Shown: positions 8,720 through 62,678 of the stretch, piece by piece
Numbering within the stretch: the stretch's first letter is position 1
Layout of the letters: each line of letters starts with the position of its first letter
Origin: Perkinsus chesapeaki ATCC PRA-425
Lineage: Eukaryota; Protista; Perkinsozoa
Direction: 5' to 3'
Length of the DNA stretch: 64,000 bases
Assembly (NCBI GenBank): GCA_013115145.1
Contig: JAAPAO010000079.1
Coordinates: forward strand, 1-64,000
Notes under the pieces: generated by a model
What the model saw: the letters and a program-made list of their open reading frames with translations, nothing else
What the model was told of the DNA's origin: nothing
The model's database searches: none
Translations under genes and position numbers: made by a program

Positions 8720-11700
8720 ACAACGTCGTTTTGTTATTCTGCAGCGTCCACCCCAGTTCCTAATACGACCTCCGACCTATCTACGACAATGTCTACAGTG
8801 CCTATTGGCCTCAGCAAGGACATACCTTGACAATGCATCAGTAACATTTAGTTTACTCCTTCTCGTGCAAACAATCATATTGTCAATCGCTCATTCCTCC
8901 TCGCTCGAGAGTATGACTTCATCGCTGCTAGATCTCGAAATATTCCTTTGCATCAAGTTTCGGTCAATCCACTGACAATGTTGAGTACGACTTAATATCC
9001 CAGGCTTTCGACAAATCACCAAATTGCCAAGTCCCAACGTCTGGCTATGACGTCAAAAGATACCTCCCTGCGCACTCTGAAGATTTTGGATACCACCACT
9101 ACCAACGCAACCATACACAGGGCTGAAAACTCATACCAAACTTTGAGCAAATCATCTTAGTTCTCACACGGCCCCAGTCCGCCCAAGACGCTGCGGTTGA
9201 GGAAGAGCAGTCATGACCATATCCATGCATTTACACTAAAAATGACGCCTGTGGGATTAGAACTCGCGACCTCTGGGTATCGAACCTTACTAATATTCAA
9301 CGAAATACAAGGAGCTAAACGTTGCGCAATTTCGACTTTCTCGAAACTTGCCATCCGAGATTCTCGCGCAGTTCTGAAGGTTCGCGGATCAGAATAATAA
9401 CACTTTCAGATAGTTACTTCGTCCTCAACAGTTTCGCTATGTGGGGCTCGGCAGCCCCCAATAGAGATGGGTAGTCAATATAGAGCTGAAAATAGAGATT
9501 TGGCGACCACCTGCCCAATTCGAAAAGGCGCGCATTCTACGAGTGTTTGAGTCTGACTTCCTTCTAATAGTTATCATTGATGACTACAGTAGATGTATTC
9601 AAGATTTGGACGACACCTACCTCCCCGAAATTCTTACCGTTTGCCCAATGTCAACTCCTGCACTTGAGCGTTTAGCGAAAACGCCGAGACCGTCCTCGAT
9701 TTGCAAACTATACGCACCACAAAGATTCTCACAGCTATTAAATAGGTCCACTAGTATTAGGAACTCATCCCTACCTGAGGAATCTTAGCTTGAAGCGAGG
9801 CTTACGCGAAAAGAAAGATACTCACCTTGCTGTGTACTAGGTAGCCCCAACGAATTCAATAATCGCTCGAGAGGAATACGAGAATAAATGGCGGAGATCT
9901 GCGGTGGGAAAAATGCCGCCACCAGGGGTCGAACTCGGGACCTCCGACCTGTTTTAATTTCGCCAAGGTTTTCTTATTCGCAATTAAAGGTATCAATCGG
10001 TTCTCAACTAACTCACGCAAACCTTCGGATTCCAACGTCCGCATATCCGCCTCTCCAAGGACAGTCCGCTGAAAACATTTACAAGCTCGATTGCATCTTG
10101 CACGGTTCAACCTAAGATACCTCTTCGCCGTTCATGCTCATTAACACTAGCTTTCCAATCACATCTTTAACTCGTCTTCTTTCTCCATCGTTCATAATTT
10201 CGCGGCGCGCGGTCACTAACAGCATATCTCCCGTATACCCGACTTGCCCATTCCCACCTGCCATCGACGCCTCTCTACCACTCCCTGTCGTCATCATACT
10301 GTTAACGTACCTTAAAAATATAACACTTGAAAGCTATGCGTAGTCGGACTCTCATACGGTCTGTGGCTTGGCTGTGGGCCGCATGCCCCTCTATGAAAGG
10401 AGGAATGGGAAGGTATAACGGTATAATCGTCTGATACCATTTGACCCCTAGGAGTCAGATAACACTTTCAAGTGGTAGTGTTCGATAATTTTTGTAAGAG
10501 AGAAGCCAGAAGCGCATCCCTGATAAACACAATGAGCAGTGAAGTTTCAAGCTATCAAATAAAATATGAAAGTATTATCGGGGATTGCCAGTTCGGATCC
10601 TATACCGGAACTTGCCAATACAGATTGATAGCAGTGAGGCAACGCTCAGTATTCCTAACCATTTCCCCTTCCACGTGACTCCAAACAAGTCAGGAAAACT
10701 CCTCAAAAATTAGTTTGATAAAAATTATTTTTTCCCAATCCGCTTTCGGATTTTCTCTCGCTCAGTCACCCGCGTACTTTTTAAGGTGAGCTGGTATCCC
10801 TTGCGGGAAAAGTTGGCCCACCGCAGCTGGCACCGTAGAACTTATCGCTCCGCCAAAATCGATCAACTTCAATACGACATAAAGATGCAACGCTCTGCCG
10901 ATTATGCCCTAAAGCGAGCAATTTCATGGCGCGCGAGAAAACTACAATTTACCGTGTTTTCCTCATTATTAAGTGTATCCTGTACACAGCAGATGGCCAC
11001 ATTGGCAGCTTGGATGGCCGCGGAAATATCCAAACGAAGAAGACACCTTGCATTGTCATACCTGAATCACTGGAACATGATACTGTACCAGTCATCTAGT
11101 GAGGGGGAATCGATTGGGTATATACCTCGCAGATGTACCACATCGACCACGTGGAAGAAATAAATACCTGGAACCTTTCATTGTCCAGAAAGTTACGGCT
11201 GCTCATCGACCCCCCTCGCCAGATGACCACGGCGAAGTGATAGAAATAGGTAAGCTTTGAAGCGAGTCAAACTGACTCTCTGGATTCTGGAGGTCAAGCT
11301 ACTCCCTCGGCCATTGAGCCCTCTGCGAACACTAACAAAGTCGGTACAACCTCTGACCGAGTGTTTTCCCAGAAGACATTCAGATTTAAGAACCTCCTCT
11401 ACACACAACCGTGAGCTCAACTCCAAACCAAAAGATACTCCAAACGGAACTTGCCATTTTTCCATCACCGCCAAAATCTTTCCTTCACCCCACATTCCCG
11501 CCGCTCACCACCATCCCAAATACTCCATTTCCGATACTCCTCTTCCGCAACAACTGATCGGTGAGCAACTCTCCCGTGTCCGCCGAGCCACCTCGAACGC
11601 CTCAGAACTCACGCTTGCCTAAAACCCCTTATGATCGTTTTTCGTCCTTACAAAGCCCTACGTGCATAATCTCGCAAAGCGCTTGCGTGAGGACGCCCGG

Positions 11701-14150
11701 CAATTCTCTTCGGTATCTTGCCAGCAATTGCCCAATAAAAGCCGGTTCTTCTCGATCGCCGCTCGGCGACTTCTTCAATGTCATGTTAACGACATTCCTA
11801 CAAACTGTATACTTTGCTGCTGGAATACACTAAAAATTTTGCCGAGAAAGTTCCGGAAAATTTCGATTTTCACAGTTCGCAACGAGCCTGGGAATCCGTG
11901 GAGCCAACATTCACCTAAATCATATAAGCATGCTAACTGAATAGAGAGCGGCAACTCCACACCATTAAAAAAACAAACCAAAAACAAACGGCAACACGGT
12001 TCTCGAAGAACCAAAGAAGCAACACTCGGGGTAATGTTCCGTCATCTCGTCCACTTTATACTTCCTGAACGAGGCCCCCGTAGTGCACTCCCATGAAATA
12101 TAATCACTTCGTGACTGGCAATACGGCAAACGACTTCCAAATGCAACGGACCCTCGAAGGGCATTAAAATCTATTCCTATTTTTCTCACTTCATCTCCCT
12201 CGGGACATTCTCAGCAGCACACACATCGATTCCGTCAAGTAGCCATCGTTGAGCCACGTCAGTCCAGCGAGGGAGTTCACTTCTCCTACCAACCAAACGA
12301 CCCAGGTTCGATCCTCGCGTTTGGCAATCAAAACTTACTTCGTCAAATCCAACATAATCGCGATCGGAATCGTGAGCTCGCGCTCCGCTAAGGTGCAGCT
12401 GATCATCTCCAGCATTTCATTGGCAGTGCCAGGGAACTGAAAACACAAAGCTTGGAAATTTTCTGAAAAAATGGGAAAATTTTCGGCGATTTTCGGAAAT
12501 TTAGGCGATTCTCTAACATACAACCTACAGCAGTCAAAAACTTGCACTTCACATTTCTCTCCGAAAAATCCACAGACAAGCAAATGTTCCGAGTTCGATT
12601 CCATCACCACGCATTTTTAATGCAATAAATCCTTACCTCTTCAATTGCTTTTCTCAATGCATCAATCTTCCCCGGTACTTCTTTCTCACGCGCCACTAAA
12701 ATATGCCCAGTAGTCTCTCTCAGCTCAGCTACCCATGCCGCTGCTTCCATTGGTTAAAACGAAAACTTTAATGCGAACGACCCAGGTTCGATCCCCGGCC
12801 GGCGCAACAACTAAACTCGTTCTAAAGAGATATAAAATCCGTACTAACTTTCACTTACATCATGATAAGAATGCAGATGATGCGATGATCCAAATGTAGT
12901 TACGTCACATTATTAAATGTACGCTATTATATACCACGCCAGTGTACCAAGTGTAACAGGTTAAGCATGCCGATTAACAATCGATCCGCCCGGGTTCTAT
13001 CCCGGCAACTGACATTTCTCAGCTAATTCATTTTTTACAATCCAACGACCTCCACGCCCGTCTGGCCTGACCGACTGCTTGTAGGCGGCGGCGGAGGTCC
13101 AGCGTGCTGTTGAGGCTCTCGAAAGATTCCCCCACCACTCAGACTAGAGGGTGTATCGTCATCAACAACCAATAGATCAGTGTCGCCTAGCAGGTTGAAG
13201 CGTGCATTTCACATGTAGCAAAGATACTCACCAGAGGTTAAACCAAATCGGCCAGTTGAGCTGAAATCAACAGCTGCTGGTATACACGAAATCAGCGAAG
13301 AGGACGCTTGAGCTGCCGAGTCCTCCGGGATACCCTGGGTTGAGGAAATTCAAGATATCCCAAGATTGCAAGATCTTCATACATCTAGGCCTCCTAGACT
13401 GGTCAATAGGCTGCCGCCACGTTGACTGAATGTAGCGCTATATGAGCTCAATAATACCGCCTCGTTATCTCGGCTGTCAGTCTTCTCGGCTTCCTATCAA
13501 ACGATCCAGGTTCGATCCCCACCGATGACACATTTAAGAGAGGAATTTCCAGGAGAAAACATCATGATCGAATACGATGGATAAGAACCAGAAGCCATAT
13601 CATCCGAAGGTTCACGCGCCGCCATCGAAAATATCTTCACCAACCATGGAGAGCACGCTTCAACCTCAGAAACACTCAGAAAACGACCGTGTCTTTCACA
13701 ACAAAAAGTTCTACCAACAACTCATCCGAGCCTTAACGAGATGAAGTAGTAAATGATCCGTTGGTCATCGAGCAGCTAGTTGAAATCACTCAGGAAAGCG
13801 ACGCATTAGGGAGGTTCGAACAACTTTGCACTCCCACAGGTCAATTGCCCGTACGGGCGAAGAGAAGTTGCTCTGACCGGGATTCGAACCCACCTCATTA
13901 TTGCCATTCTCCCACGCCCTCACCAAAGACGTCGGACACATACTCATCAGGTCAGAGATCTTCCTCTTTATGAAACTCTCGCCGGTGCGATCGTCGCCAG
14001 TGCTCCTCGTGGCAACACCGCTGTCAGCATTTGAGGCCGCCGCCGCCGCCTCCAACGTCTGAATAATAAGATACTCACCTTACATGAGTGCAGATCGATT
14101 ACTAATCAATGGAACAAGATACCAACGCTGGAATCCACGGTTGCGAGGGA
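8720..14150 (-). CDS. Multi-exon gene with hydrophobic segments; possibly the 3' part of the ankyrin gene (TRP-like channel architecture)
   Basis: In-frame exon joins (LDLTK|RSELPRWTDVAQRW; AKLKQ|ISAIYSRIPLERLL); TM-like exons at 10.5-11.5 kb (SSVWSIFWFGVELT, GILSVASLLSICIG); no firm family match. Confidence 0.5.
9243..9285 (-). pseudogene. tRNA-3'-half/B-box element forming most of a ~50-nt intron
   Basis: cccagAGGTCgcgaGTTCTAATCCcacaggcgtcA-TTTTT-ag; G53 to discriminator = 21 nt. Confidence 0.75.
9914..9948 (-). pseudogene. tRNA-3'-half/B-box element starting at the donor of 50-nt intron 9899-9948
   Basis: gtcggAGGTCccgaGTTCGACCCctggtggcggcA-TTTTT; 21-nt spacing. Confidence 0.85.
12295..12326 (+). 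pseudogene. tRNA-3'-half/B-box element, antisense in 53-nt intron 12286-12338
   Basis: aaacgacccagGTTCGATCCtcgcgtttggcA; 21-nt spacing. Confidence 0.8.
12737..12806 (+). pseudogene. Degenerate near-full-length tRNA-like element (Gly-like 3' end), intronic antisense
   Basis: cgacccagGTTCGATCCccggccggcgcA; 21-nt spacing; eroded 5' half. Confidence 0.8.
12985..13014 (+). pseudogene. B-box element overlapping a probable donor site
   Basis: gcccggGTTCTATCCcggcaactgacA-TTT; 21-nt spacing. Confidence 0.65.
13499..13530 (+). pseudogene. B-box element, antisense next to an acceptor
   Basis: aaacgatccagGTTCGATCCccaccgatgacA; 21-nt spacing. Confidence 0.75.
13869..13893 (-). pseudogene. T-arm/B-box element whose first two bases are the GT donor
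   Basis: exon ...AATGAG|GTGGGTTCGAATCCcggtcagagcA; 21-nt spacing. Confidence 0.8.
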
Positions 14151-14299
14151 AGAAAATTTTGAGAAATTTCCGTCGACTTTTTTTGCATTGAGAATTGTAT
14201 TTTCTGAGGAGATTGTAGAGTTCAATCAAGTTAGAGTAAAATACTTATCAACAGCAACGATAATATGAGCGGAGCATTTGAATCCTAGTCTGCGCTATT

Positions 14300-16961
14300 T
14301 GGCCACCTGTGACAGTTGAAGCCTCGACGTAGTGTTAAGTAGGGATGTTAGTTGCCATAATTTTATAATGCCAAATTTACGGGGAAAATTTGACGAAAAG
14401 TCAGCGTTTTTCTGTTCTTTGGGCATCTGCTGAATACAGGCAAAGTAAGGCTGGGTTCGAAATTTCAACAAATTAGGTAAAAATGCCTCCACCAAGATTC
14501 GAACCTGCGACCTTCTCACCTCCTTCACTGCTTTTGTCCTAGGGTGCTCCATCATAAGCCTAACAAGCTCCTCATCTTGGAAGATATCTTCTTCGGCCAT
14601 CTCCGCTCCGCCTCGGAGTTGCGCGAGAATCTCCGGGCCAAGTCCGATTCCGGCAGTTTCCACCGGGGTGCGACCGTTCTGGGGAAAAAGCGGAAAATTT
14701 TACTCGTGAAAATTCAAGCGTCGAAAGTATATGGTTAACACTACAAAAATATATGGTGAAGAGCCACGATGAAATATTTCCAGAGAACTTTTTCCGAGAC
14801 CATTTGAAAAGACCGAACCGATTTTACTAAATTTTAAGTAAGATTTTTGTCATTCTCCCTGGAAAGTGACTTTTTTTTCTGAAAAAAATGACACGGTATC
14901 TTAGGTCGAAGCTCGCATTTGACAGAATTCCTCCTCACCACGTCTCGAGCTTCCAAATCTGCTCCATGCCTCAACAAAATCTCAACAACGTCAAGCGCAG
15001 CCATCTCCGCTGCGGCATGCAAAGGAGTGCGACCATCAATAGGATTAACCTGACGAAAATTTTCACGCGCCACGAAATTGTCTCACCTCGTTTATAGATG
15101 CGCCATACGATAGTAAAAGTGCAACTGTGTCGCTCTGATTGGTAAGGGCCGCCACGAAGAGCGGAGTCCAACCTTTGTCACCCCCATCATCAGGATGCGC
15201 CCCGTATCTGATATCGATCACGCAATCGATTGTAGTAGTACATCCGAGCTCATCCGAGCAAGTTAGATTTTCTGTGAAATCCACCAAAAATGTCCGCGAC
15301 AAAGCCTCGCCAACTGGCCAGCAAAACTCTCCCAAATCGAAATTGATTACCGACGGGCAGGTTAGGCTCTGGGTCATTAACGAGGCAAATTATTTGCCAG
15401 TCGAGTCCATTCTTGCGCGCCACAATATTCTCACCTCAACAGCGTTGCAGCTATAGCAGCTCCCCCTTGCTCCCGGCACGCCACAAAGAGCGGTGTCGAA
15501 CCATTCCTGGAGATCGCATCCACATTGGCTCCTCTAGACAGTAGAAGTTCACAGATGGCAGGTTTGTTAACGAGATAACACGCCTCATGCAAAGGAGTGT
15601 ATCCAGACTGAAAGCACAGCAATTAGTCACGCGCCACAAAATAATCGATCAAGTGATCGATAATGTATTCTACGGTAGATTTTTTTCTGTACTCCTCCCG
15701 GTTTAGCGAAGGGAAAAACACCATGGCGGGAGAATCATTATTTTCCCTCTAATCCCACCGTAACACGAAAAACGTAAAACAAAAAACGCTTCGCTCCGCC
15801 CTTACCGATCCCTTTGCATTAACATTGCATCCTCGTTCTAGCAGTACCATAGTCGTTGATAAGCATCCTGATCGGGCCGCTCTTTGTAGCAGCGTACCTC
15901 AGAAATTTTCCGAAAAGTTTTCTTTTTTTCCCGGAATTTACCTCCCTCAGTGTCTCTGCAGCTTTTGACATCAATGTCACTCGTAACGATCATCAGCCAG
16001 AGGAGATCCGCCTGGCCAGCAGCCGCCACGAAAAATGGATCCAGCGTCATCAAATTCAACTGAATTACACATTTTACGGCGCGCGGGAAAGGAGAGGAGG
16101 GGTAGATTTACATGTAGGAAATCAAAATAGTCAGGCACAAATCATTCCAGGAAATTCTGTGAAAATTGGAAAAATCCGCGTTAAACTTCCAGAACGCATC
16201 CTGCACGCACCAGGCAAAAGGGGGTAGGAAAAAATCCAGAAAAACAAGTAAAAAGCGAAATTTTCAGGAAGGGGAAAACACGTAAAAATATTGCAAAAAG
16301 TAATTTTTTCGCGCACTAAAAAATCGGTACAAATTCGAAAATTTACACAAAATTTACAGTATTACTGTATCAACAGCCCGCTGGGAAGTGGTACTACCGT
16401 TACCTCCATTGAAACTTTTGAGAGTATCTTTCCAACCCTCTCGGAGGTCAACCTCCAATAAAATATCTTGCTAAGACGTCTGAGCTTGACCAATACTGAT
16501 GGCAAGAATGCACATACAATTTGAAGAACCTGAAAAAAAACGTCACTGCGCCACGAAAATAAGAGCTATCATTTTTTCTCACAACCGGCAGACAGACATC
16601 ACCGCACTTGATGATAAATTGCTTTCCTATGCAATTGCAAATGTTCTAAATCAATTTTGCGAGGCGAAATTTGAGCGAATTGATAAAGTGCTCAAAGAGC
16701 AAGCACTTCAGCTGAGTTCATCAATGTGGCAAGCAGCAAACAATTTAGCGAGTTTTAAATGATTTAAATGTTTTAAGTGATGATAAATACGGTGGACGTA
16801 TATCTCCCATTACATGCACTGCGCTCCTTAAGACCTACCTTATCGTCGTTAATGACTTGACTTAATCGAATAGTTTCCCCGCCACTTGAGGGCTTCCCCT
16901 CAGAAGAGGGCGACCCCGAAGTGGCCGTTGTAGTGTTTGATTTGCCCGCTTCAGATGACAT
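14300..16961 (-). CDS. Ankyrin-repeat protein, multi-exon
   Basis: GTLLQRAARSG...LLERGCNVNAKG; GYTPLHEAC...LLSRGANVDA; GWTPLFVAA...LLSYGASIN; GRTPLHAAA...LLRHGADLEARD; 5' exon at 16961 is tentative. Confidence 0.88.
14484..14519 (-). pseudogene. tRNA-3'-half/B-box element starting at a donor
   Basis: GAG|gtgagaAGGTCgcagGTTCGAATCttggtggaggcA-TTTTT; 21-nt spacing. Confidence 0.85.
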
Positions 16962-17334
16962 TTAGATAAATCTCACTCTGAGAAAATTCACCGAAAAATT
17001 TCAGAAAATCTCGGAAAAAATGGAAAATTAGGCAAAAAAAGAAAATTTCGGAAATTTTCACGGTCGGCAATTACCTTACGAGTGGAAAACACTTACATCA
17101 AATATGTGTATGATTTTCAAGAAAGATAACTTAAATTCCAGACAAATACTACTCGAAAAAGCTTACCGCCCTTCCCTTCATTTTTTAATCACTCAACTCA
17201 ACTCAACCGTCACGCGCCCAAAAATGACAAATCTTATAGTAATAGGAAACGTTAAATTGAAAAAGGATACCCTATTCAAGGCCATCAGACCTCTCGGCAA
17301 TTGCCCAAGAACAATGGTGATCAATTTCACTATT

Positions 17335-17375
17335 TTACATGCTAATAACTTGCTTTGGAGTTTCCTCCTCCTCCT

Positions 17376-17406
<31 letters not shown>

Positions 17407-20400
17407 CGACTCGTCGTCGTCGTCACTGTACTCGCTCGCTGACCGTTGACTCGCCACCAGCTCTGCCCACTTCAATCGATTGCTGTTAATTTGCTCAACA
17501 ACCTGAAAAAAGTAATATGGAACAGAAAGTTTTTATTTCAAAATAGAAGCTTTGGAAGAATCTTTCAAGAAAATAATACTTACCAGTTTCTGAGGTTCGA
17601 TCTAAACTGTTAACGAATGATCAGTTTACTGTTGACGTACGGACAGGACAGAAGCACAGATCGGAGTGGACGACAAAATTTTCTGAGATCCTTTGTTTTG
17701 CGATTTCATTTGGAAATCAGACTCGATGAAAATCGTTTCGAAGATCAAAATTTCTTTGTCGTACGATATTTTATTTCACAAAATGTTCAATACTTTATTG
17801 AACATTTTACGGCATTTCAAATCCCACGAAAAGTTAATTCTCAACAAGTGCAATTTATAAGTTTTCAATTTCACCAAGTGATGCAAGTTCCCTTGCTTCT
17901 TAATAGTGCCACTTTCCGAAAAATTTCCGAAAAAGTGGGAGAATTCAGTAAATTTGCCGAACAAATGAAAATCCACTTACATCTTTCATACGGCCGCTTG
18001 CCATCGGATTATATTGATCGACTCTCTTCTGGATGGCATGGTACAGCGGTAGAGTGCCTGACCGTCAGATATTTCACACCAAAGGTCCCCGGTTCAATTC
18101 CTCCTCACTCATTTCTAAGAATCCTAATTCCATTCCAGGAACGTCCAAAGTGGCAGAGTCGCAATAAAGGCTCACGGGGATGCCCATGGCCCACTCATCA
18201 TCTCCTTGAGAAACATATTCGGAAACTGACAAAAAAATTCCGGGAAAAATTTTCCCACCTTTTTCCCTGTCTCCGAAATGAAAGTTGTTGTGTAAAAAGC
18301 TCAACATAAAATGGTAGACCCGGAATCATAACATCAACCGCTCCACGAATTGCCACCACTCTCAAAAAATAACGAAAAAATATTTTATCAAAAACGCAAT
18401 ACTTCGTGAAATTAGCAATACGTAAAATTTTGGAGAAAAATATTTTCTATTGAATAGAAAATATTCAGAATGATAAGAATAGAATCTATTCTCACAAAAA
18501 TAAACCTCGCATCAACTCTGGATTTCTTCCTACATTCAAGATAGTTTATTTTTCGAAAATCTTGCAAATTTTCCGGAAATTTCCTAGAATTCTCCGAAAC
18601 TTACTGAGCCTTTCCACGCTAGAGTAATGAGAGTCCCAAGGCATCGCCGTGAATCCCATGTCAGCCGCTCGTATAACAGCTCGAAGTAAATGAATAGGAG
18701 CAGTACTAGGATCCTAAATCTTGCAATCTTGACAAATCTCACATTTCCTCAACGCACCTCAAGTTCCTCCACTCTTCTGAAATGGCTCGCTACATCTAAT
18801 GACATTATACAGTCGATAACTATTTTACGAAATCGGTCATTTTCGGACCTGAAAAATTGGGAAAAATTGCTGCGATTTTTTTGCACGCAGACGCCAAAGG
18901 CCATTTCACCGACAATTGCCTGTCTTCGAATTCCATTCTTCGCTCGTCCCATCCAAAAATAATAAAACGTTTTTGGCGGAATGAATCACTAGTAAGAAGA
19001 AGAAAATTCAACGGAAAAATTTCCGGAAATTTCCAGGGAAAAATTTATCTTACGTCGAAAGCCATTTAGTCGGATCACAGGTCGGATTCGCTTCGAGCGC
19101 TTCGAAGGTTGTCGCTGCGTGGAAATTCTGTAGTACCGATCTATCGTTGTATCTGAAAAGGTGATGAAGGCGGAGCGAAGCGACTTTTGTTTGTCATTTT
19201 TCTAAAACAATAAAAAATTCATGATATTCAGCGATTCAACTATCTCCGAAAGAATTAACACAATTCCAACTTACGTCACTGCAAGCTCATGTTCCGTCTC
19301 TATGAGGAAATCTGCCGTCCGAGCAAAGTGGCCAACCTAAACACAAATAGCTCAGTCAGTTAGTCCCTTCTTCTCCCATCGCAAAGGGCGTTGGTTCAAT
19401 CCCTTCTCCCGACATTTACATCTCCACAGAGGCAAGCCACGACGAACGCTGCCCATTCAAGAGGATGAATTTCAGCGATTCCCATCGACTCCAGTAGAAA
19501 GAACCTGAAACGCACGCCATTACCGCGCGCCACAAAATGAAGCAGTTTCAGGAGCCATGCTCAGCGAAATATGGAGATTTCCCCGTTCCAAAACATATAA
19601 ATTTCCTATGGTTCTTCGCATTGTTGCTTTTCCAGGATAATATTTTTTTCAGCGAATCACACATCGTAAAAACCAAAATTTCCAGAAAAAAATCCCGAAA
19701 ATTTCGGAAAATTTCCGTTAATCTCTGCTTACCCGTGGTGTGTCCTTTGTGCTGCATGTTTTGAATTATGAAATGGATTCGGCAAATAGAGTTGGTCGAT
19801 TAAAGTGAGAAATTTTTGAAGGCAAATTTGCCCTGATGCAGGAACACCAGACGAAGACGTCTTCGAAGTCTCTCCCACTGAAAACGAACACCGTCACTCG
19901 CCACATAATTGAGATAATTACTTGGCGCGTGAAGTCCGGGACCCATCAGCTGATTCATAATTGTGAATCCAACTAGTATAAATGCCGAGAGGCTTGTGGA
20001 CTGAAAAAAAGAATTTACCAAAAATAATTTTACAAAAATCTAAGAAAATCTCCATGGAAAAATGATCAAGGGAAAACATAACGGGAAACCGCTTCAGGCT
20101 CGCTGTGCGGAGACATAGAAATAATATTGTGTGAAAAATACTTGAAAAATAGGGTTAAGTCGGCTAGAGATATTCAAGAAACCGCCGTGATACTCGATCC
20201 GCGAGAAAACGTAGAACTGAGAATTTGGGGAAAATATCTGATACAAAAACAGAAATTTTCCAGAAATTTTCCCAAATTTACACTATTTTCGTGAAGAGTT
20301 TTTTCCAATTGATAAGCATCGAGAGAAAAATCCCGACCAACGGCCTTCAGTAAAGACATCGCAGAAGTTCCCAGCTGATCGAGGAATCCACTATCTGAAA

Positions 20401-20870
20401 AATAAACAAAGATGTCTGGACCGGGATTCGAACCTGCGTACCTGGTTTGACCGGATAAAACGGTCGCCTCAGTCGAACATAAGGCGGATTAGACGTGCTC
20501 GTCGGTTGAACTGGTGGAATTACTTCTCGTATCCATTCAAGAATCTAATGAGCGCGAAATCGATCACGTGATCGATTTGTGTCTCACTTGAGATTTCCGG
20601 AATTCTGCTCCGTTTTTTATCCAACCGAGTAACACTTCCTTCTGGAAATCCATTACAAACAGAGACTTTTGTGTTAGTCGCGACTGAACAGAAAAAATAG
20701 GAAAAAAACGGAATAATGAGGGGAAAATAATCTTAACAAAGGAAATCCGATAAATATTCCCTGGCAAAAATTCTTCAGAATTTCTTACCGTTTCTTGTGC
20801 ATGCTCAACATCTTCCAAAAGATATTTATTATCTTCGGGGTAACCAATCGATCCCTCTTGCCTGGCCCGC
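17335..20870 (-). CDS. Class I cyclic-nucleotide phosphodiesterase domain with non-canonical active-site residues
   Basis: NPFHNSKHAAQ; VACLCGD|VGHFARTADFLIETEHELAVT|YNDRSVLQNFHA; FRKIVIDCIMSLDVASHF; LRAVIRAADMGFTAMPW; EYVSQGDDEWAMGIPVSLYCD...MELGFLEM|STLPLY; VEQINSNRLKW. Confidence 0.88.
18075..18111 (+). pseudogene. tRNA-like variable-loop/B-box element, antisense in 51-nt intron 18058-18108
   Basis: cacaccaaAGGTCcccgGTTCAATTCCtcctcactcA-TTT (20-nt spacing; last bases exonic). Confidence 0.7.
19341..19414 (+). pseudogene. tRNA-sized element with A-box and B-box but no acceptor stem, filling 83-nt intron 19337-19419
   Basis: TAGCTCAGTCAG at 19348; GGTTCAATCC at 19393; ...gacA-TTT; spacing as in a 74-nt tRNA. 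Confidence 0.8.
20413..20441 (-). pseudogene. T-arm/B-box element at the donor of 47-nt intron 20395-20441
   Basis: CCAG|gtacgcagGTTCGAATCCcggtccagacA-tcttt; 21-nt spacing. Confidence 0.85.
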
Positions 20871-23800
20871 TCTAGTATTCTTTCGATATCAGTTAATCGC
20901 TAAAAGTGACAAAATTACAGCGGAGCGAAGCGAGAAATTTCCAAACAGATTTCGATAGTGAATTGCATACACTGGTTCCTCGTTTTCGCGCAACGCTGCT
21001 AGGCTAACGGCTTTTACAATCGAGTTGGTGGCGCCATATCGTATCGAGACTGGAATGCGAATACTCTCATATCTTGCTCATTTTACGACAACCATCATTG
21101 GGGTAGTCGTTGGCCTCTGCTTTCTGTTTTGCTGCGAGCTTGTTCAAATATCCGACTCTCGGTCGCAACATCCTACCCGTGAAGGTCTACGTGCAGGCGA
21201 TAACGACAACAAAGGGACCCTATTAGTCTACCAGCTAGCGGGTTGGGGAGGGTTCTTTGGTTAAGATCATTCGAAGGGATTTTTATTTCTAATGAAAATC
21301 GAATGCGAATCCTCGGGGTTCACGTGGCATACTGGTTGAGAAAGGACTTCGTCCGACGAAGCTGTGCGGTCGGAAGAACTCGAAGGAGAGCATCCAGGAA
21401 GCATCATCAAGCAAGGAGACCCTCATGGGGCAGAGAGCTGTTTCGTCTAGTTGGGAAGAGCAGTGCGCCAGTACTACTGGCCCAGTAGTGAAGTTGTCCC
21501 AGCCTCCCACTGTGACGGATGGGATGAATCGCGAGGGTTTAGGGAACGATACGTATTCCCGAGCTTATTCTTGCGTCTTGAAATGTGAGATCCCTAGTAA
21601 CTGCTGACAGTGAATTCAAATATTCAGAATTGTTGGAGATGTTTTCGTTGTTCAATATCCCATTGATGCAATCGTTGCAAGAGACTTGTTAACCCGTATG
21701 GTTGCGGAAGAGTTATACAAGGGATTTCCCTTTTGCTACTGTGGAGATCCTACCGACATCGTTAACGAAGTTGCCTTCTTGGTGCTACTCGTGAAGATCT
21801 AGGAGCAAACGAGAGCCACGATGAACATTCCAACGAAAAGATCCTATTAGTCTACCAGCAAGTGAAGTTAAGGCCGAGGCTCTGCATCACCCATGCCTTT
21901 AGACGCGGTCACGCTCACGCTTTAGCGGTCTCTGGCGCGTCTTAAAAAGAAGTGTGTGTAACTGGTTCCTGGAGGTACCAAAATCATGCAAGTGGCAGAG
22001 ACGATGCATATAATATAACCATCATCTCTGCCAGCAAGATATACATCATCTCATCAGATATATACTATCTATCAGCGAAGAGTACTGCCTCGAGAAGCGC
22101 ATTGCGCCTGCATACTATGCCGCGCATAGATAAACGGACCGGGGAGCATCTTCCTAGCCCGAAAAAAGGTTCCGCCAGAAAATGTTCCGTCAACTGTTCA
22201 GGAAGTAAGATTCGGTTAATAATGCAACCTTATACGGCCCGTTTTTCTTTATATAACCCTTTGGATATTCAGGTTCTCAACCAACCCTTAAGGAGCTAAA
22301 CGGATAACAAGAAGGAACTTTTGAGGAGCCCCTCGAGTCAACTCTGGCTTCAGAGTTTGAGAAGGATGTGCAGTAGCACATAGCCGGCAAGAAGTCTGAG
22401 CAGCACTTAGCTCCTAGAAGTCCTAAATTGGCAGTTACCGCGCGCAAACTCTCAAATTAGTTGAGTGGAAAAAACCATTTCCCTTGGAGATCAAGCTGTT
22501 GGGTTAAACAGAAGCGTGCGGGTGACACGAGTCATATTCGTAGTAAAGAAATCGCCACCCCCGGATTGCCCGATAATAACCCCGGAAAACATGAAAGAAT
22601 AACCCGAAACCCAGCTTGACAAGAAACCCGGCCCATCCAGGAACTAGACGAAGCTATGCTTGAGAATTGTCCGAACGAGCCCGCGCACCGTGGCAGTCTG
22701 CCACTGGCAGAGTCACGTTTTATGGGGCGTTTTTCGTGAGGGGCACCACAAATCCTTCCCAATTCGAGCCGTTCTCGGCAAAATGAGACGGCTTCCTCCG
22801 AAAAATGGGCAGAAAAGGAAAATTACTAATTTTAAATTAGAAGAGTATGCTTCCTGCGCAGAGGATAGCCGGCAAAAGTGCGTTGAAGTACTCTGCCAGG
22901 TAGAGTACAGAGTCTAGAGTCTGCCTCTAGAAGTGATTGAGGTATATAGCTGAGTTGGATTCGGAGGCTGTCACACCCAATTCGGCGAATCACGTTAGCC
23001 TTGCACTCGCGACGAATTCAGCGGCAAGATAAGGCTATGGAAAGCCATGATGTTTCCGTCCGGAGCGAGGAATGATAGTTCATAAAGACATATAAATCTA
23101 AGGCTTACCTTGAGTTCTCCTTCTATCTGTGAAGTCAGGGGACCATCAGAGTTAGAATCAAATGCATTTATTGTTGATTCAAGAACCTACGGAAATTAAT
23201 AAAAGAATCCCGGAAAATGTGGAAAAAGGGCACCGTAGAACTTGAGGAATTTCCCCAAAAAATGTGTTTTATAGGATCGTAGAACTTCGCAATATACATT
23301 TTGTGACAAAATGTTAAGTGCCTTCGTGAAGTTACGAAGACAAAATTTTCGTCTTATCGAACGGGTGATCAATTTGGGTGGCTTCGGAATATCTTCGCTT
23401 ACTCCAATAGCTCTCTGCGTAACCTCCATATTAAGATAGTTCTTTCTCCTATACATTTCAATCTGATATTTACCTGCCAAAGCCAAAGCATCCAAGAGCA
23501 GTTGCGCTATAATTGTGAACCTGAAAATGAAATGAAATTAGAAACGAAACGGCCCATGAAATTAGGGCCGAATTCGAAATGAGATGCAATGAAGCATAGA
23601 ATTATCTATGGCAAATGATAACTACGCGCTAAAATGTCGTTGGCCCAATATTTTAAACAAAACAGACATTCTACCTATATGTAGCTGCCATACCAATAAG
23701 GGTGACAGGCACTGTGCAAAAACCCAACGAAAAGCCACTAATGGACGCAAGATGCGTCCACCGGGGATCGAACATGGAGGAGAATTTTAAACTACTATTC

Positions 23801-26800
23801 GACATGAAGATTCGATTCTTACATACTAGTGCATGTTGCTATTATAAGGAGTAGCTTCCTCAGTGTTAACAAATATACAATAGATACATGTTGATAAAGC
23901 AGACAGGCCACGATGTAGGAAATATAATAAAAATTTCCGCCGCCGAGGATCGAACCCGAGACTTACAATGCTCGACTAACAGTGAATTCCACATCGATAC
24001 TGACGGTATTCGATTCCGGTATGTACGATATCGCCGTAACAACCGTATAGAGAGCTGCGGCAGGAATAACCAACCAAACTAGACGACAAAGCCTTATGGA
24101 AGAGTAAAAAGCCAGGTACCTAACAATTGGGAATAGTAAAGGAACATGCTTAGGAATGCATTTCATGTTTCTTCCGATCTAGGACATATCTTGAGAATAT
24201 GTTCCTCCCTTCGGAAGAAACCTTTTATTGCATTCCTGGACTAGCAGGACATTGCCAAAAATTTTCCAGAATTTCCCGAAGTCCATCCGCCACATCGCAG
24301 AGAAGGTTTAGTCGCAAAACGCAAACAACCTCATGAAGTTTATCGGTCACTGATAGACGTGTCTGATGCCGTCAATCGCTGATGAGTCTTCGTGGTGAAG
24401 ACGAAACACGTAATAGTGTGTGGCTACCACAGTGTGGTACACGTATGACCATGCCAAATATCGGATGAATCTATCCTGTGACTATACTGCAGTCCCTGGC
24501 GCATAGTGTTGACCAAAGCATCTGTTAACGCTCCGCTTCGGTAAGCGTCTAACAAGCTGGTGTGAACCACACCAGCTTGGCCCGCTGCGGTACTCCGCAA
24601 AGGCTGTAATTACTCCCAGTCTGCAAAGAAAACCAGCACTTTACGTCTGATGGCAAATTCTTTCTCCCATTGTCGAAGGACAATGTCCTTAGGATATGCA
24701 CACCATTCAACTGCGATATCATGCTGGCTTAATCCAATAAAAACACATCAGTCTGAGGCCATATAGGAGACGGATGTGGTACAGCAAGATGCTCTTGCCC
24801 ATCCCCGGTCCGGGGAAACCCAGCCGGGCATAAGGATACACCGCTGATCTTGGTACTTCAAGGAGGCAAAACAGGTGACAGGCTCGTGATTGGCGCCCGG
24901 GTCCTGCCATACACAGCCTGGAGCTTCTTCAACTCGCTTATTCTATGGGTGGATCGATTGAACAGCACGTAAGCTTACCTCAAGCCATGCTCTCCCATCC
25001 CACAGAGGTTGCTTCTTTTCCGCGCATCCCTGCTAAGTGTCGAGCCTATGGCTCGAGCACTGGGACTAGTAAGCGCCCTCGCCGAACTTGTCAGCAAGGT
25101 CTTCGGCAAACCACTCCATGGTGTGCAGCCATCGGATGCTTAGATCATCAGATGCTCAGACCATAGCCACATATCGGCTTTCACCAATCCTGGTTCGCTT
25201 TATGAAGTCATCTGGGCGTAACCCTGCGCTTGCAGAGTGCAGAGTCACGATGGCACTTGTCATAGCTATGCTAATCGAAGACGTGCCTTCTGCCCGCTCC
25301 CATGCACAACTGAATTTCGCAGTGCAGAGTGCACGTGTGCCCAATGGTCAACGGAAAAATAAGTGAAATGGAGCCAAGGTCATTCGGACGAAACTCCAGC
25401 TCATAACAATTTATGAAATCTACAAAAATCTCCATAGGAACTGCCCTGTTCACCACGCGCCCTCACAACAGAGCCGGGAGTTGAAGTGATACTGTTGACG
25501 CGTGGGTTGCCCGCAATGGTAGACGGTGGCCGTGATAAAAACAACTCTGCCTTGTCGATAACAGTCGACGTGCTGAGTTCAGAGATAGCAGTGCAAGCCG
25601 ATAACAAAGGAACCATTGAATCTCCCGAAGGGCCAGTGAATCTCCTGAGCTTGCGGTAAACCGATCCGATCTTTCCCAGTCTTTCCGCACCGTGGCCATA
25701 TGCTATAGACTTACTCTACAGCCTATAGTGATACGCGGTGTTAAAGACTTCTCTAGAGAGATGGAAAGTGCCGATTCCTTAAGCCAAGAATCTCACGAGT
25801 TGCAAACTTGTACCACTTTAATTCAAGAAAGAGCCTTTTGAAAGACAGGACTATTGCGACAGGGAGGGCGACACTGGCCCACGCCAATAGCACATGTCGC
25901 ACTTCAAAATTCTCACAAATTATCCCGTATTTTTCCCGTGCCTCCCCCTTACGTAATTAGCCCAGTTTGAAGCACAGCAAAGTCCGCTCCTCTCCACTGG
26001 GACACTTCAGTGCCGTAGGCATCTTCAATACTCACATCTGAAGAATAAGGAAGAATGTAAAAAACCCATCGAGCAAGACGACTCCGCATTAAAACTAATA
26101 ATACACAGCAATAATGCCACGCAATATCAATCGGAAACATATACGAAGTAGTTTGTACCTCTTTCATTAAATTAATTTTCTGAGTGGTTCTCGGGAAATT
26201 TACACTTATCCAATTTCCCATTTTTTTCCGGCTTTTCCAGGAAAATCCTGGGAAAAACGGGAAATTTTTTCCTCCCCAATAGCATTACTGCATAATCGAG
26301 ATGCCCGATAAAGGTCTCCTGCAAATATTTCCAATAAAACAACAATCCCAGTCCAAATTAAAACACCAACTTCTGCCCGACCTCGCAGTACCCACGGGAA
26401 AAACCGCAAGGCTATACATAAGATACCTGAACCAGGAATCGAACCCGCGATCATATAAATAGAGGTCCTCGATTAGAGGAATCTTCGCTAGCTGAGAAAA
26501 TATCTTAGCTTCTGCTAGTATTTAGCATTTTACCTGTCATAGTTGTCATACACCTTACAACGAATTTTCTGTGAAAAAATGTCCTCCTTTCGATATTTTT
26601 TCCACGTAATTTCCTAAACTCTCCGTCATTGAAAATCCCAAATTTCGTAGAATTCCACAGTAAGAAGTTTTCCCTGAAAGATTTCCTCCACTTAGTCCCA
26701 TAATATTACCCATTGCGATTGTGATCAGCCACGCTATGTTATAAAAGATATTTGCACTCGTTGCCCATCGAGCGATCAATGGAGTAGACGTAAAACTCCA

Positions 26801-28888: not shown

Positions 28889-28920
28889 GGATGACCCAGG
28901 TTCGAATATACCATAGCATA
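28889..28920 (+). pseudogene. Intergenic B-box element
   Basis: gatgacccagGTTCGAATataccatagcatA-TTTTT; a second cccaggttcg at ~28971. Confidence 0.6.
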
Positions 28921-29412
28921 TTTTATAAAAATAATTCGAAAATATTTGTATTTTATTATCATAATAATTTCCCAGGTTCGTTATATATTCAAGCTATCAA
29001 ACACATTGGATGCTCTTCTTCGAAAGCGGCTACTTGAAGTAGGAAAATTTTTGAAGTCAGAATCATCCTGAAACCTTATCACGGGAAGATCTTAATAATT
29101 CTTTATTGATATTGAATAATAATATTTTCTATTCAGACTGTTCACCATAAAGTTTTTATGTATTTTTCATGTAGCAGTACGTAGAGATGCAACGGAGACA
29201 TTTAGGATGACGCGCAGAGTAGATCTAGGAAATTGCAAGATCTTGTAAGATTTCAAGATTTCTGAAACCGTTTCACTCGCGCAGTCTCCTATTTTGTGGC
29301 GAGGTGACACGCTGATCGACCCCAGGCGGACCATGCAAGATTCCCGCGAGGTCGATAGGCGTGCCATGTTCTTATAATCGATCAACCTTCTTCTAGCTAT
29401 TAGTCCGTTCTA

Positions 29413-47130: not shown

Positions 47131-47214
47131 TGACATGCGGCAATGTTTGTAGGCCTCAGGCAGAAGGATATGATTCGCCCTTGAGTTCCGTGACACCTGA
47201 GAAAACCTTCGGCC

Positions 47215-48845: not shown

Positions 48846-50443
48846 TATGGATCCTCGAGGGACACACTTCTACCGGCCAAGATGGCCCTTTGCCTAATGG
48901 TTACGCTTCTTGTTCATGTATCGAGAGGTATCGGGTTCTATTCCCTCACTCGTCGTTTTACAGGCTCAAAAAGCGCATCCTTATCCTATGTTGTATCGGA
49001 AATGCAAGGATGGCGAGACACTATGGAGGACGCTTGCATTTGCCTTCTAGAAATGGAGCCACCGCTGGCCGACACAAGTCTCTTCGCCGTTTTTGATGGT
49101 AATGTGGGCGGTGCCCTATCAGATTAGCCGGTAGTGTCTGTGTTAGGTCACGGAGGCTCTATGGTGGCGAAATTATGTGCTCAGAGCTTCCCGCTGGAGA
49201 TTTGCCGACACGCTAAAAACGAACTTATCAGGATTAAAAGGCAAAGTGAGGAGCCCGAGGGACAGCAGCAGGAAGCGACGGCGGAGGAGGAGGAGGAAGG
49301 GAAAAAGAAACATCGACATCATCATAGTCATAGTAAACTCAATATTTTACGTAACCATCGGAAAGAGGAGCAGCAAAACTCTGCAACAGACGAAAAGGGA
49401 GGAAGCGATTCAATTGAGGATGATGAATCTGATGACGACGAGTTTGATGAGGATATCGAACCAACACCAGAGTTGATGGAAAAGTTGGACTTCGGCAAAG
49501 TGCTTACTACAACTTACATGGAGATGGATGCACTTTTGGAGTCGACAGGGAAGCTCACTCCACCCAAGGACGGGTCTATTGAGAATGCCCTTAAGCACTT
49601 GCCGATTGGTAATCCAGCGATGGCCATGAGTGGCATTGAAAGAAGAAACATGTTTGATTTTACTGGAAGTACTGCAGTTGTTGCAGTCGTTAGGAATGGT
49701 GTTATTACTGTCGCCAATTGTGGTGATTCAAGAGCGGTTCTTTGTCGAAGTGGAAGAGCTGTGGAGCTCAGTCATGATCATAAACCTGAGAGCCCCAGCG
49801 AAAGACGGAGAATTGAGAATGCTGGAGGTACTAAGGGAACCGGGTTTTCGGGTTTTCGGGTTTCGGGTTTTCCATCTATTTGTAGGTAAAGTGATGTCTA
49901 TGGGACCTTGCCATCGTATCGATTGGGGTTTGAATCTCTCTCGAGCACTTGGTGATTTTGTTTATAAAAGAGCCGAAAGTTTGCCTGCCGAGGAGCAAAA
50001 GGTTTCACCGATGCCCGACATAGTGACCGAGGAAATCACCGACGATGACGAGTTTATGGTACCGATTTTGTGGCGCGTGAAAAAACATTTCGTTCCCTCA
50101 GGTGCTGGCATGTGATGGCGTTTTCGAACTTCTCTCATCTCAAGATGTGGTTGACTTCATCAGCAGACGATTACACAACGGCGAGAAGCTTCATACGATT
50201 GTCGAGGCCCTCCTGGATGAGTGTTGCTCGAGGAATCCCCGACTAACTCAAGGCCGCGGTACGGATAACGAAACCTGTATTATTGTTAGTCTTAATGGTA
50301 TGGGAACTTCTAGTACAGTGGGACACAGTAATGTCACGGCTGATGTCCATTTCGCTCGTCCAAAATCAGCTGGTAAAAAGGCTAATGGCGAGGAGGCCAA
50401 ACGAGATGATGGTGATAGTCCTGTTGTTGATGATTCCGCTTAG
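48846..50443 (+). CDS. Protein phosphatase 2C (PPM family) with acidic insertion; 5' end approximate
   Basis: SEMQGWRDTMEDA; FAVFDG|HGG; GSTAVV; ANCGDSRAVL; LSHDHKP; LNLSRALGD; LACDGVFE; GRGTDNETCI. Confidence 0.94.
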
Positions 50444-50773
50444 TTCTGTACTATATAGTGGTTATCTCATTGTTGATAATTACTTTTCTCATTCTCATCA
50501 TTATTGTGTTGGTACATGAGCCAGTGGTTGGTTACTAGGATTATTAATATAGTATTACGCAATAAATAGCGTACCACAATCATCTAAATAAACAATCTAC
50601 CTCGCACAATACACCAGCGAAAAATCGGACAGGACCTCCGAATCAATGAACGGAGGTTGGTTCAATCTTTTGTAAGCTTCTTAATAATGGTTATCAATAT
50701 TTCGTTGCTTTCACTGTCTTGATGATTAAGTCGTAACTGTTGTTTTAGTAACTCAACAATCACTATAAATAGC

Positions 50774-52404: not shown

Positions 52405-52635
52405 TACACAAACTGATAACGATCTTCAGATTTTATTAAACTGGAAATGCAATGGGAATCATTACTTCATTGAAACAAAGATGCCATAATCGATCAGCTG
52501 ATCGATTTGAACTGGCTAGCTATCAACTCACTATTAACGTACCGAAACTGTAGCATGTATCACATTAAAAAATATATGTCATAGAAGAACGGCAATGTGT
52601 GCCACATCATCGACTGCCAATCAAATGCCATCTCT

Positions 52636-60900: not shown

Positions 60901-62678
60901 CTTGTACAATAAACCAAGAGTAAGTTGCGTAATAATGATTATTACACAACTTATTACTTTACGATTGCTGATACTTATTCACGAGGGTATTATTAAATTC
61001 GTAAAAAAGTATAAGTTAAACCCCTTGGCACTTCCCTTCCTTTACATTCTCTTATGATCCCTTGCTGGAGGTAACATCACATAACCATCACCATTAGTAA
61101 GAACAAACACCGACACCTCAGGCCCTTCCAATAGCTCCTCAACCACCAATGGACCGCCATAGAGACCTAACAGACATGAAAAGATGGCAAGCCACAAGAG
61201 GAAAAGTTCATACCGAATAGTTCTCTAACAGCCTCTTTCCCCTCCCCTGCACTACCGGCCACAACCACTCCCTTTCCAGCGGCAAGCCCGGAAGCTTTAA
61301 CAACAACACCGTTATCTGAAATATATACGAATGATCATGATCAGACCGATCATCGTTGACAAGTATAATAGGCTTCCCGCAGATAATCTATAAATGATTT
61401 TCTCTTTCGAAAGTGATACAAAATTAAATTTTGCAGATTTTCCTACTGAAAAAAGTTGGGTATTTTATTAAAATACCGTCGCCAGGATCCAGGAGAGGAT
61501 CACCGAAAATACATCTTCCGCCAATTTAATTACCAAAACAGAATTGCTGAATGTTTCATATCTGTCCACCGAAAGACCCAGGTTCAAATCCCACCAGTGC
61601 ATATTTTATCAACTGCTCTTTCTCCTTCCTCTATTGTCGATGCCGTAATGAACTTGGCTGTCGGAATGCCATGTCTCTCCATGAAGCTCTTAGACCATGA
61701 TTTACTCGCCTCAATCTCAGCTGCTGCGGCAGTAGGACCGAATACCGGTATCTGAGTCCATCACTCAACAAATCGATCACGTGATCGATTATGGTATTCC
61801 CACATAAGTCGGTACATACGAAATGTGATTCGCAAGTTGTTTCCACAGAGCTTGTTTCCTATGTAGCTGCTCAAGACCCCTTAATGATTCAGCACACAGT
61901 GGTTCTATTATTTCTGATATGTTTGTATCGCATCACTTGCCTTTCCCCCAATTACCTTATATCCCTGTAATACATCTACTATCCCATCCGCTAGAGGCTG
62001 CTCTGGTCCAACTACCACCAAACTAATATGCTTCTTTTTACAATACCCAACAATCGACTCTTTACTGACATTAACCGCCGATATCTGAATATAATGACTT
62101 CCATCCACTTCCGTGCCTTATCGAAAACCTCACTAGAAGACACATTCCTAATAAAATGAGTAAACACCTTTCTCCCAGGCGGGCATATTATTTCTGCCAA
62201 AAAATGCGGTAAGAGTCGATAAATTAGAATCAATTCAATCAAACATGACAGGTCACCAATCGAAATAAAAATAAATATCGACTCAATCACATCATCTACA
62301 GCGACTCCTCTCCCACAAAGCAAAAATTATCGGGAGTATTTTTACTGATCTTTCAGACAGATTAAAAGAAGCTTCCTGAATCAGATCAGAAGCTCAGGAA
62401 ATCAGATAAGAATCAGAAACCCGAGATGAAACCCGAAATGAACGGTCAATCTCCCAGAGAGATTAAAAGGAGCTTTCTGAATCAGATCAGGTGAGAGTCA
62501 GAAACTTTCTGAAAGATTCTTTCAAGCCAACTCCCCCTCCTTTACCCATCATTACATTTATTAATTTCTCGTGCTCTCCCGCATTTCCCGGAGCAACATA
62601 AACTCTACCCACTCGATGACTAGCGGCCATCGCTTTAGCCAATGCGTGTTCTCTACCGCCAGATCCTATTACTAATAC
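54953..62678 (-). CDS. Bifunctional GAR synthetase - AIR synthetase (PurD-PurM, ADE5,7-like); start codon exon not located
   Basis: [14 protein letters not shown]; [14 protein letters not shown]; [13 protein letters not shown]; [12 protein letters not shown]; [10 protein letters not shown]; then [12 protein letters not shown]; [10 protein letters not shown]; [11 protein letters not shown]; AAHITGGGL; TFNVGIGM. Confidence 0.94.
61569..61601 (+). pseudogene. B-box element straddling a GARS donor site (antisense)
   Basis: ccgaaagacccagGTTCAAATCCcac|cagtgcA-taTTTT; the last ~7 nt are exonic. Confidence 0.7.

Follow-up and report, generated by a model that had tools for sequence, protein, structure and literature searches.

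tRNA-gene relics, mostly in short introns of Perkinsus chesapeaki, retain a B-box block conserved in the Perkinsus marinus clade

Our analysis of a 64,000-nt stretch of the genome of Perkinsus chesapeaki (hereafter the window), a parasite of oysters and clams, revealed 21 short elements that are remains of the 3′ parts of transfer RNA (tRNA) genes and carry a B box, the motif bound by TFIIIC. We call them relics and name each by the window position of its G53, the G at tRNA position 53. They are eroded as tRNA genes and most appear to lie in introns of about 50 nt. Most of those that could be compared with DNA of the P. marinus clade have a counterpart at the same place there, and a block of about 22 nt around the B box is conserved in these pairs. 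We lean towards the explanation that these are ancient relics of tRNA genes, mostly intronic, whose B-box block is under selection at the DNA level, probably as TFIIIC sites similar to the extra TFIIIC (ETC) sites of yeast.

Census and anatomy of the relics

The original prediction, made from the sequence of the window, listed 19 elements with the pattern GTTC(G/A/T)A..C. GTTC(G/A/T)ANNC is present at all 19 positions, in the orientation given for each. We found two further relics, 12593 and 48935, both on the plus strand, and a second B box at 9285 on the minus strand, which shares its gap with 9263. A sequence-only covariance model (R1) built from the 21 relics had no other match above 7.2 bits in the window except two true tRNA genes, and we therefore regard the census, which is bimodal, as complete with 21 relics and two tRNA genes. 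The latter are the only intact tRNA genes reported in the window by ARAGORN and Rfam:

6978-7049, minus strand: tRNA-Pro(CGG), intact; ARAGORN, Rfam 49.5 bits
34702-34783, plus strand: tRNA-Ser(AGA), intact; ARAGORN, Rfam 59.1 bits

Enrichment was evaluated against dinucleotide-preserving shuffles of the sequence. The strict B box GGTTCRANYC occurs 17 times in the window versus 2.04 +/- 1.3 times in shuffles (shuffle maximum 6-7), and a B box combined with a purine at offset +20 and a T-rich trailer occurs 19 times versus 2.9 +/- 1.8. The loose 9-mer by itself is weakly enriched (38 versus 24). The signal thus resides in the combined features and not in the loose 9-mer, and with this specification the predicted excess over a composition-matched background was borne out. 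The relics are clustered by gene neighbourhood and not evenly spaced: gaps between them are irregular, from 182 to 12,647 nt, and 15 of the 21 fall in 9-27 kb (P = 5e-5, post hoc). A genome-wide lattice of TFIIIC sites, as had been suggested, is not seen in the sense of regular spacing.

What can be recognised in a relic is the variable loop (often AGGTC), the T arm, the 3′ acceptor strand, the discriminator base and the T-run of an RNA polymerase III (Pol III) gene. The 21st base counted from G53 (offset +20, tRNA position 73) is A or G in 17 of the 19 listed elements, as the original prediction had it, and in 19 of all 21; the exceptions are 18092 and 61582. Ts follow the discriminator in most relics and CCA in none. 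The B-box consensus GGTTCGANNCC is matched by G52 in 17/22 and by C62 in 18/22; G53, T54, T55, C56 and A58 are invariant solely because our search criteria required them.

As tRNA genes, the relics are badly damaged. Standard pairs make up 59% of their T-stem pairs versus 100% in both live tRNAs, and when the 53-61 pair, fixed by the search, is left out, the fraction is 49% versus 37.5% at random. Neither ARAGORN nor Rfam (RF00005, even at E <= 10) called any of the 21 as a tRNA, with no cloverleaf found, and there was no enrichment of an A box at the relics. Judged by cloverleaf, A box and T-stem pairing, none of them is a working Pol III gene. As the A box is not enriched, the 5′ halves are not retained, which makes split or permuted tRNA genes unlikely, and we dropped this candidate. 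Outside the motif the mean pairwise identity among relics is 43% and that of the best pair 73%. The neighbouring antisense relics 12306, 12786 and 13510 share a 5′ part, CAAACGAYCCAGGTTCGATCC, with 65-73% identity at non-motif positions. Since the tails are dissimilar, the relics do not form one family of short interspersed elements (SINEs). Judged by these features, the elements are the 3′ parts of decayed tRNA genes of several different origins. The original prediction had noted the eroded T stems, the trailing Ts without CCA and the mixed tRNA origins, and on all three it was right.

Conservation in the P. marinus clade

DNA of other species was reached by using exons of the window as queries. 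The sequences obtained were a contig of P. marinus ATCC 50983 (L001), two contigs from run SRR12548988 (L002 and L003) and a short P. olseni contig (L004). In the 953-nt overlap of L001 and L002, the match between the SRR12548988 contigs and P. marinus ATCC 50983 reaches only 93% identity; the former derive from a divergent haplotype or strain or from a sister species. The contigs are collinear with the window at 27.5-23.7 kb and 19.3-11.5 kb, where identity in the exons is 65-75% for DNA and 60-88% for amino acids. A protein word search with exon 37462-37716 found no homolog, so that the relics at 35-38 kb stay outside this comparison, and a search with an exon of PRP18, the gene hosting the tRNA-Pro, returned the window's own protein and no other species' locus.

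Ten relics are covered by P. marinus-clade DNA, and eight of these (12306, 12786, 12994, 13510, 14504, 18092, 23955 and 26444) have a positional ortholog. The two that do not are 13889, whose intron is shared, and 12593, for which no P. marinus counterpart was found. Three relics were found in the P. marinus clade only: L003 533-564 (minus strand), L001 3193-3215 (minus strand) and L002 2194-2222 (plus strand). The first of them, at L003 558, lies in an intron common to both species (window 27016-27158), from which the relic is absent in P. chesapeaki. The P. olseni contig has a different B-box-like motif in the matching intron, at L004 1166.

We anchored the eight pairs at G53 and computed the identity in each region:

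Upstream flank: 39%
Variable loop: 68%
T stem, 5′ strand: 78%
B box: 83%
T stem, 3′ strand: 72%
Acceptor strand: 45%
Trailer: 42%
Beyond the trailer: 34%

None of the eight pairs differs at C50, G52, G53, T55, C56 or C61, and the variable positions 57 and 60 are the degenerate positions of the B-box consensus. All eight orthologs retain the B box, none with more than one mismatch. As the search motif may bias positions 53-61, the other positions of 44-65 were tested separately: 85 of 120 are identical (71%) versus 99 of 240 in the flanks (41%; Fisher P = 1.2e-7). In MAFFT alignments the 44-65 block shows 78% identity, exons 71% and other non-coding sequence 48% (38% with gaps counted), and the remainder of the relic introns is essentially unalignable between the species. 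The global alignment misplaced 13889, 12593 and 12306, and these three were redone by local alignment and synteny. A model trained solely on relics of the window, applied to about 10.4 kb of P. marinus-clade DNA, gave nine distinct matches of E < 0.02.

Sense and antisense relics have the same conservation profile, and the T-run is kept in sense pairs and lost in antisense pairs. Because stem sequences that no longer pair are conserved, the constraint is on the sequence and not on an RNA hairpin, and the same observation argues against repair by gene conversion from live tRNA genes. Selection at the DNA level, one of the two readings offered by the original prediction, is therefore supported: eight of ten relics are kept, with the block above the non-coding background and alike in both orientations.

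Relics in short introns

Perkinsus genes are intron-dense, with introns of 39-1622 bp, mostly below 100 bp (PMC3101222). The window fits this picture, with only six open reading frames (ORFs) of at least 150 aa across 64 kb. De novo gene finding (codon log-odds dynamic programming, ORF-reconnection enumeration and stop-free chaining) gave no usable models, because 64 kb offers too little codon signal and either strand contains long open frames. A search for the best flanking ORF of each relic had no discriminating power, a Pfam scan of ten long window ORFs gave no match, and two tiny P. chesapeaki RNA runs contained nothing from 9200-15100. Gene structure was therefore taken from the public annotation and from the comparison with the second species. 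Reverse-complemented, window bases 1-18421 match the start of contig JAAPAO010000079.1 (assembly GCA_013115145.1) at 100% identity.

The starting point for the interpretation is an intron that still holds a live gene:

6961-7066, minus strand: PRP18 intron, 106 nt, with 17 + 72 + 17 nt around tRNA-Pro

As the annotated PRP18 protein KAF4673621.1 joins 7067 to 6960 exactly, the tRNA-Pro gene fills this GTAAGG...GTCAG intron in sense orientation.

The relics are listed below by their window coordinates, with intron coordinates, orthologous positions and model scores where available (a slash within a sequence marks the splice site):

9239-9272, minus strand: relic 9263, tRNA positions 44 to trailer +4, 14.7 bits; proposed GT..AG gap 9236-9290 (55 nt), with the second B box (G53 at 9285); intron status weak, after the stop of the annotated 447-aa gene and with a downstream frame of only 7 codons
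9910-9943, minus strand: relic 9934, sense, 23.3 bits; proposed intron 9899-9948 (50 nt), nearly all relic; flanking open frames of 61 and 37 codons, inside the range of the annotated 447-aa gene
12297-12330, plus strand: relic 12306, antisense to its minus-strand host; intron 12286-12338 (53 nt); ortholog L001 3072 (minus strand) with the GT..AG boundaries kept
12584-12617, plus strand: relic 12593, antisense, 19.6 bits; first intron of the annotated 447-aa gene
12777-12810, plus strand: relic 12786, about 40 nt upstream of the annotated start codon 12750; ortholog L001 2330 (minus strand)
12985-13018, plus strand: relic 12994, just past the annotated stop codon at 13035; ortholog L001 2134 (minus strand), the best-conserved of all pairs
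13501-13534, plus strand: relic 13510, antisense to its host; 3′ splice site ..GATAG/GAAG conserved; ortholog L001 1595 (minus strand)
13865-13898, minus strand: relic 13889, sense, beginning directly at the 5′ splice site GAG/GTGGGTTCGAATCC; P. marinus intron at the matching place without a recognisable relic
14480-14513, minus strand: relic 14504, sense; intron 14451-14519 (69 nt); ortholog L001 726 / L002 4196; 5′-side exon conserved, GT..AG in both species
18083-18116, plus strand: relic 18092, antisense to its host, Val-like with the anticodon loop TTCACAC retained; intron 18058-18108 (51 nt), between tblastx matches of 84% and 61% amino-acid identity; ortholog L002 947 (GGATCGAATCC)
19385-19418, plus strand: relic 19394, whole-tRNA relic with A-box-like TAGCTCAGTCAG; proposed intron 19337-19413 (77 nt), antisense
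20409-20442, minus strand: relic 20433, sense, 22.4 bits; proposed intron 20395-20441 (47 nt), with open frames of 34 and 72 codons on its sides
23749-23782, minus strand: relic 23773, 18.2 bits; contig L003 stops near it
23931-23964, minus strand: relic 23955, sense; 5′ splice site GTAAGT at 23965; ortholog L003 2065, in a 53-nt P. marinus-clade intron with identical 5′ splice site
26420-26453, minus strand: relic 26444, sense, at the 3′ end of intron 26427-26533 (107 nt); ortholog L003 ~1345 (GGTTCGGTTCC), within an intron of 64 nt that has tblastx exon matches on either side
28891-28924, plus strand: relic 28900, the most decayed, C61 lost, 13.4 bits
35255-35288, plus strand: relic 35264
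35444-35477, plus strand: relic 35453, 22.4 bits
37806-37839, plus strand: relic 37815; proposed sense intron 37802-37848 (47 nt)
48926-48959, plus strand: relic 48935; proposed sense intron 48918-48963 (46 nt), flanked by open frames of 52 and 53 codons
61573-61606, plus strand: relic 61582, probably antisense to a minus-strand host, as judged from GC skew only

Most relics thus appear to reside in short GT..AG introns, and a few outside annotated coding-region introns. The evidence for an intron is strong, i.e., a cross-species GT..AG and coding flanks, for 12306, 14504, 18092, 23955 and 26444. For these five introns GT..AG is found at matching places in the two species, flanked by coding sequence that is conserved on each side, or on the one side that could be resolved. 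The lengths in P. chesapeaki and the P. marinus clade are 53/51 nt (12306), 69/70 nt (14504), 51/69 nt (18092) and 107/64 nt (26444). For 9934, 19394, 20433, 37815 and 48935 the evidence is moderate, with open frames on both sides of proposed introns of 46-77 nt. Relics 12786 and 12994 lie within a 285-nt gap that separates two annotated genes, and 9263 lies past an annotated stop. The original statement that most elements lie in introns of 45-85 nt is thus supported in part, with five strong and five moderate cases of an intron; these three relics are outside annotated coding-region introns. Among the relics of the 9-27 kb minus-strand genes, seven have sense and seven antisense orientation, in agreement with the claim that both orientations occur.

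Every relic intron that could be resolved is an intron also in P. marinus, and we saw none that one species has and the other lacks. The proposal that tRNA genes repeatedly colonise or create introns is not borne out by this comparison. The part of the proposal that concerns decay of tRNA genes within introns fared better, as the PRP18 intron with its intact tRNA-Pro demonstrates the starting state; the decay in place is a step that we infer.

Several further observations concern these loci. The intron of 14504 contains a second, inverted B-box-like motif, GGGTTCGAAAT (plus strand, 14455-14466), right before the 3′ splice site. A D-arm-like part of 18092 (GGTACAGCGGTAGAGTGC, window 18036-18057) lies in the coding exon of the host, just past the 3′ splice site, and hence an old tRNA insertion may by now be partly coding. 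Next to 12994, the 507-aa ankyrin gene ends in the annotation with TTG TAA (13035-13038), a stop that overlaps a possible 5′ splice site, GTAAAA, and the equivalent place in P. marinus (L001 ~2075) reads TTG TGA / GTGAAT; the gene may end at 13035, as in its present model, or may continue across the relic. The run of exons in window 23718-27514 spans about 3.8 kb in P. chesapeaki and 2.27 kb in contig L003, so that intron lengths differ greatly between the species despite the kept relics. The Rfam model of the type III hammerhead ribozyme (RF00008) weakly matches the window at 24356-24412 (plus strand) over its full length, with 33.6 bits and E = 0.002, below the gathering score of 48.5.

What may maintain the B-box block

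By the explanation to which we give modest preference, the relics would have started as live tRNA genes nested in tight introns, as tRNA-Pro is in PRP18. After the death of the tRNA the intron would have shrunk to the usual length of about 50 nt, and features needed at the RNA level (A box, stem pairing and acceptor strand) would have decayed. The block of about 22 bp around the B box (44-65), in which G52, G53, T54, T55, C56, A58 and C61 are nearly fixed, would have been retained by purifying selection on the DNA, with TFIIIC as its most plausible reader. Our preference for TFIIIC is based on two considerations: it is, to our knowledge, the only known reader of the B-box motif, and yeasts and mammals have established TFIIIC sites that consist of a B box alone. 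Binding of the relics by TFIIIC is predicted from the motif, and we see the chances of it as about evenly balanced.

A competing explanation, to which we assign a rather low probability, places the constraint on RNA: the tRNA sequence would supply the splicing signals of minimal introns. In sense relics the variable loop (AG/GTC) would give or abut the 5′ splice site and the T-run would act as the polypyrimidine tract; in antisense relics TCGAAC, the complement of the B box, would be the branch site, with the 3′ splice site following some 20 nt later. Several observations agree with such a role. Sense relics begin 5-27 nt past a GT, the 5′ splice site overlaps the variable loop in 20433, 23955 and 37815, and it is the sense pairs, not the antisense ones, that preserve the T-run. 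In six of nine antisense relics the first AG on the host strand comes 16-21 nt after the complement of G53, versus 0.117 at random (P = 1.6e-4, post hoc), a spacing that puts the 3′ splice site at the would-be anticodon loop. In 50-nt introns such as 12286-12338 TCGAAC is the sole well-placed branch candidate, and the core of the B box is nearly palindromic. However, the conserved 22-nt block is well above the 5-7 nt that a branch site needs and is conserved in both orientations, and TCGAAC is a poor fit to the generally known consensus for U2 pairing (yUnAy / UACUAAC). Longer relic introns hold ordinary CTRAY motifs elsewhere. Moreover, the B box of 26444 is kept though it lies at unequal distances from the 3′ splice site in the two species (13 versus about 30 nt), and 12786 and 12994 are conserved yet lie outside annotated coding-region introns. 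Splice signals may nevertheless explain why pieces of tRNA make workable introns.

We give the remaining explanations still lower probabilities. A mobile tRNA-derived element, a SINE or an 'introner', could have spread and created introns, the similarity of its copies reflecting common descent; clustering in few genes, the shared 5′ part of the three antisense relics of neighbouring gaps and the introns that consist of a relic and nothing more would all be expected. We nonetheless find it improbable: the copies are old, at orthologous places in species with about 30% DNA divergence of exons, their mean identity is low and their tails differ, there is neither a body unrelated to tRNA nor a tail like that of a long interspersed element (LINE), and the presence/absence differences of introns that such an element should leave between species are not seen. 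An ancient burst may have occurred, but it would leave the later conservation unexplained. The view that the relics are neutral wreckage, i.e., functionless decaying tRNA pseudogenes with B boxes that are an artefact of the search, agrees with the eroded stems, A box and acceptor strand, with the species-specific relics (2 + 3 of 13 slots) and with the loose 9-mer that alone is barely enriched. It is already disfavoured, and we consider it still less probable, as the relics were found in P. chesapeaki and only then traced in the P. marinus clade, where eight of eight keep the B box, and as their non-motif positions are more conserved than flanks (71% versus 41%, P = 1e-7) and even exons, while the rest of the same introns cannot be aligned. 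Gene conversion from live tRNA genes, or continued Pol III transcription of the relics as small RNAs, seems the least probable of all. The unusually many tRNA genes of P. marinus (PMC3706591) could serve as donors, and a B box with discriminator spacing and a T-run could support B-box-driven transcription. Conversion, however, would restore pairing, and instead eroded stems that do not pair are conserved between species; Pol III transcription is hard to reconcile with the missing A box, the undetectable cloverleaf and the loss of the T-run in antisense relics.

Several points weigh against TFIIIC-type sites kept by selection on the DNA, our preferred explanation. The sample is small, comprising eight pairs on three contigs and essentially one sister clade, and the orthologs were located partly by the motif, which inflates the identity at 53-61. 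Turnover is real, with two relics specific to P. chesapeaki and three to the P. marinus clade. As the B-box core is near-palindromic (TTCGAA), its occurrence in both orientations excludes an RNA-level reader incompletely, and the position of the first host-strand AG, 16-21 nt past the B box in six of nine antisense relics, fits a role in splicing. In addition, RNA polymerase II (Pol II) would presumably be hindered if TFIIIC occupied many sites within genes.

A more far-reaching possibility, which we put forward tentatively, combines both roles. tRNA genes might be a major raw material of Perkinsus introns, bringing splice signals in both orientations, the variable-loop AG/GT and the terminator T-run in sense, and a branch site in the T-loop complement and an AG in the anticodon loop in antisense. 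The B boxes of the dead tRNAs would then have been kept as TFIIIC sites, densely arrayed within genes, with a role in organising chromatin or the transit of Pol II in certain gene neighbourhoods.

Should the conserved block prove to be a TFIIIC site, the B-box-only sites of Perkinsus would be by far the most densely placed of any known and would lie inside genes, and the genus would offer a natural system for studying roles of TFIIIC away from Pol III genes. The relics also bear on the origin of introns, as they form a graded series from a live tRNA that fills its intron to a 50-nt intron made of a tRNA half. In practical terms, they are useful markers of introns for annotating a parasite genome with weak coding signal, and across Perkinsus species they provide dated non-coding characters for comparative genomics.

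Comparison with known systems

The nearest parallels are the ETC sites of Saccharomyces cerevisiae, the chromosome-organizing clamp (COC) sites of Schizosaccharomyces pombe and the mammalian ETC sites, which share with the relics a B-box consensus and the lack of a working Pol III gene. Related species have ETC sites in common, and the action of these sites is on the DNA and independent of orientation. The relics differ in being recognisable remains of tRNA genes that are found inside genes, mostly in introns of about 50 nt, and in that their occupancy by TFIIIC is predicted. Their density reaches about one per kb in some genes, in contrast to the handful of ETC sites of budding yeast, which are intergenic.

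tRNA genes nested in introns are found in animals and other eukaryotes, and the tRNA-Pro in PRP18 is a case of the same type. Unlike other nested tRNA genes, it sits in an intron that barely exceeds the tRNA, and in Perkinsus dead copies are kept as half-genes. tRNA-derived SINEs (MIR, B2) and the introners of Micromonas, fungi, dinoflagellates and Amoebophrya (PMC7789003) resemble the relics in placing tRNA sequence with a B box in genes and in forming introns from one element, respectively. In contrast to both, the relics are heterogeneous, derive from several isotypes, lack both body and tail, have orthologs in another species and show no sign of recent spread.

Dada DNA transposons are known from the same genus, in P. 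marinus, where tRNA genes are numerous and dynamic, with more than 500 copies across five tRNA types (PMC3706591). These elements are 4.7-11 kb long and insert in the D-arm region of live tRNA genes, and nothing similar flanks the relics. We considered the relics as scars of Dada and rejected this, as Dada targets a different tRNA site and no such element is present. In our full-text literature searches we met no account of tRNA relics in Perkinsus introns or of B boxes conserved there. Sites with only a B box are known already, as are tRNA genes nested in introns; what is unusual here is the density of the relics, their placement and their origin.

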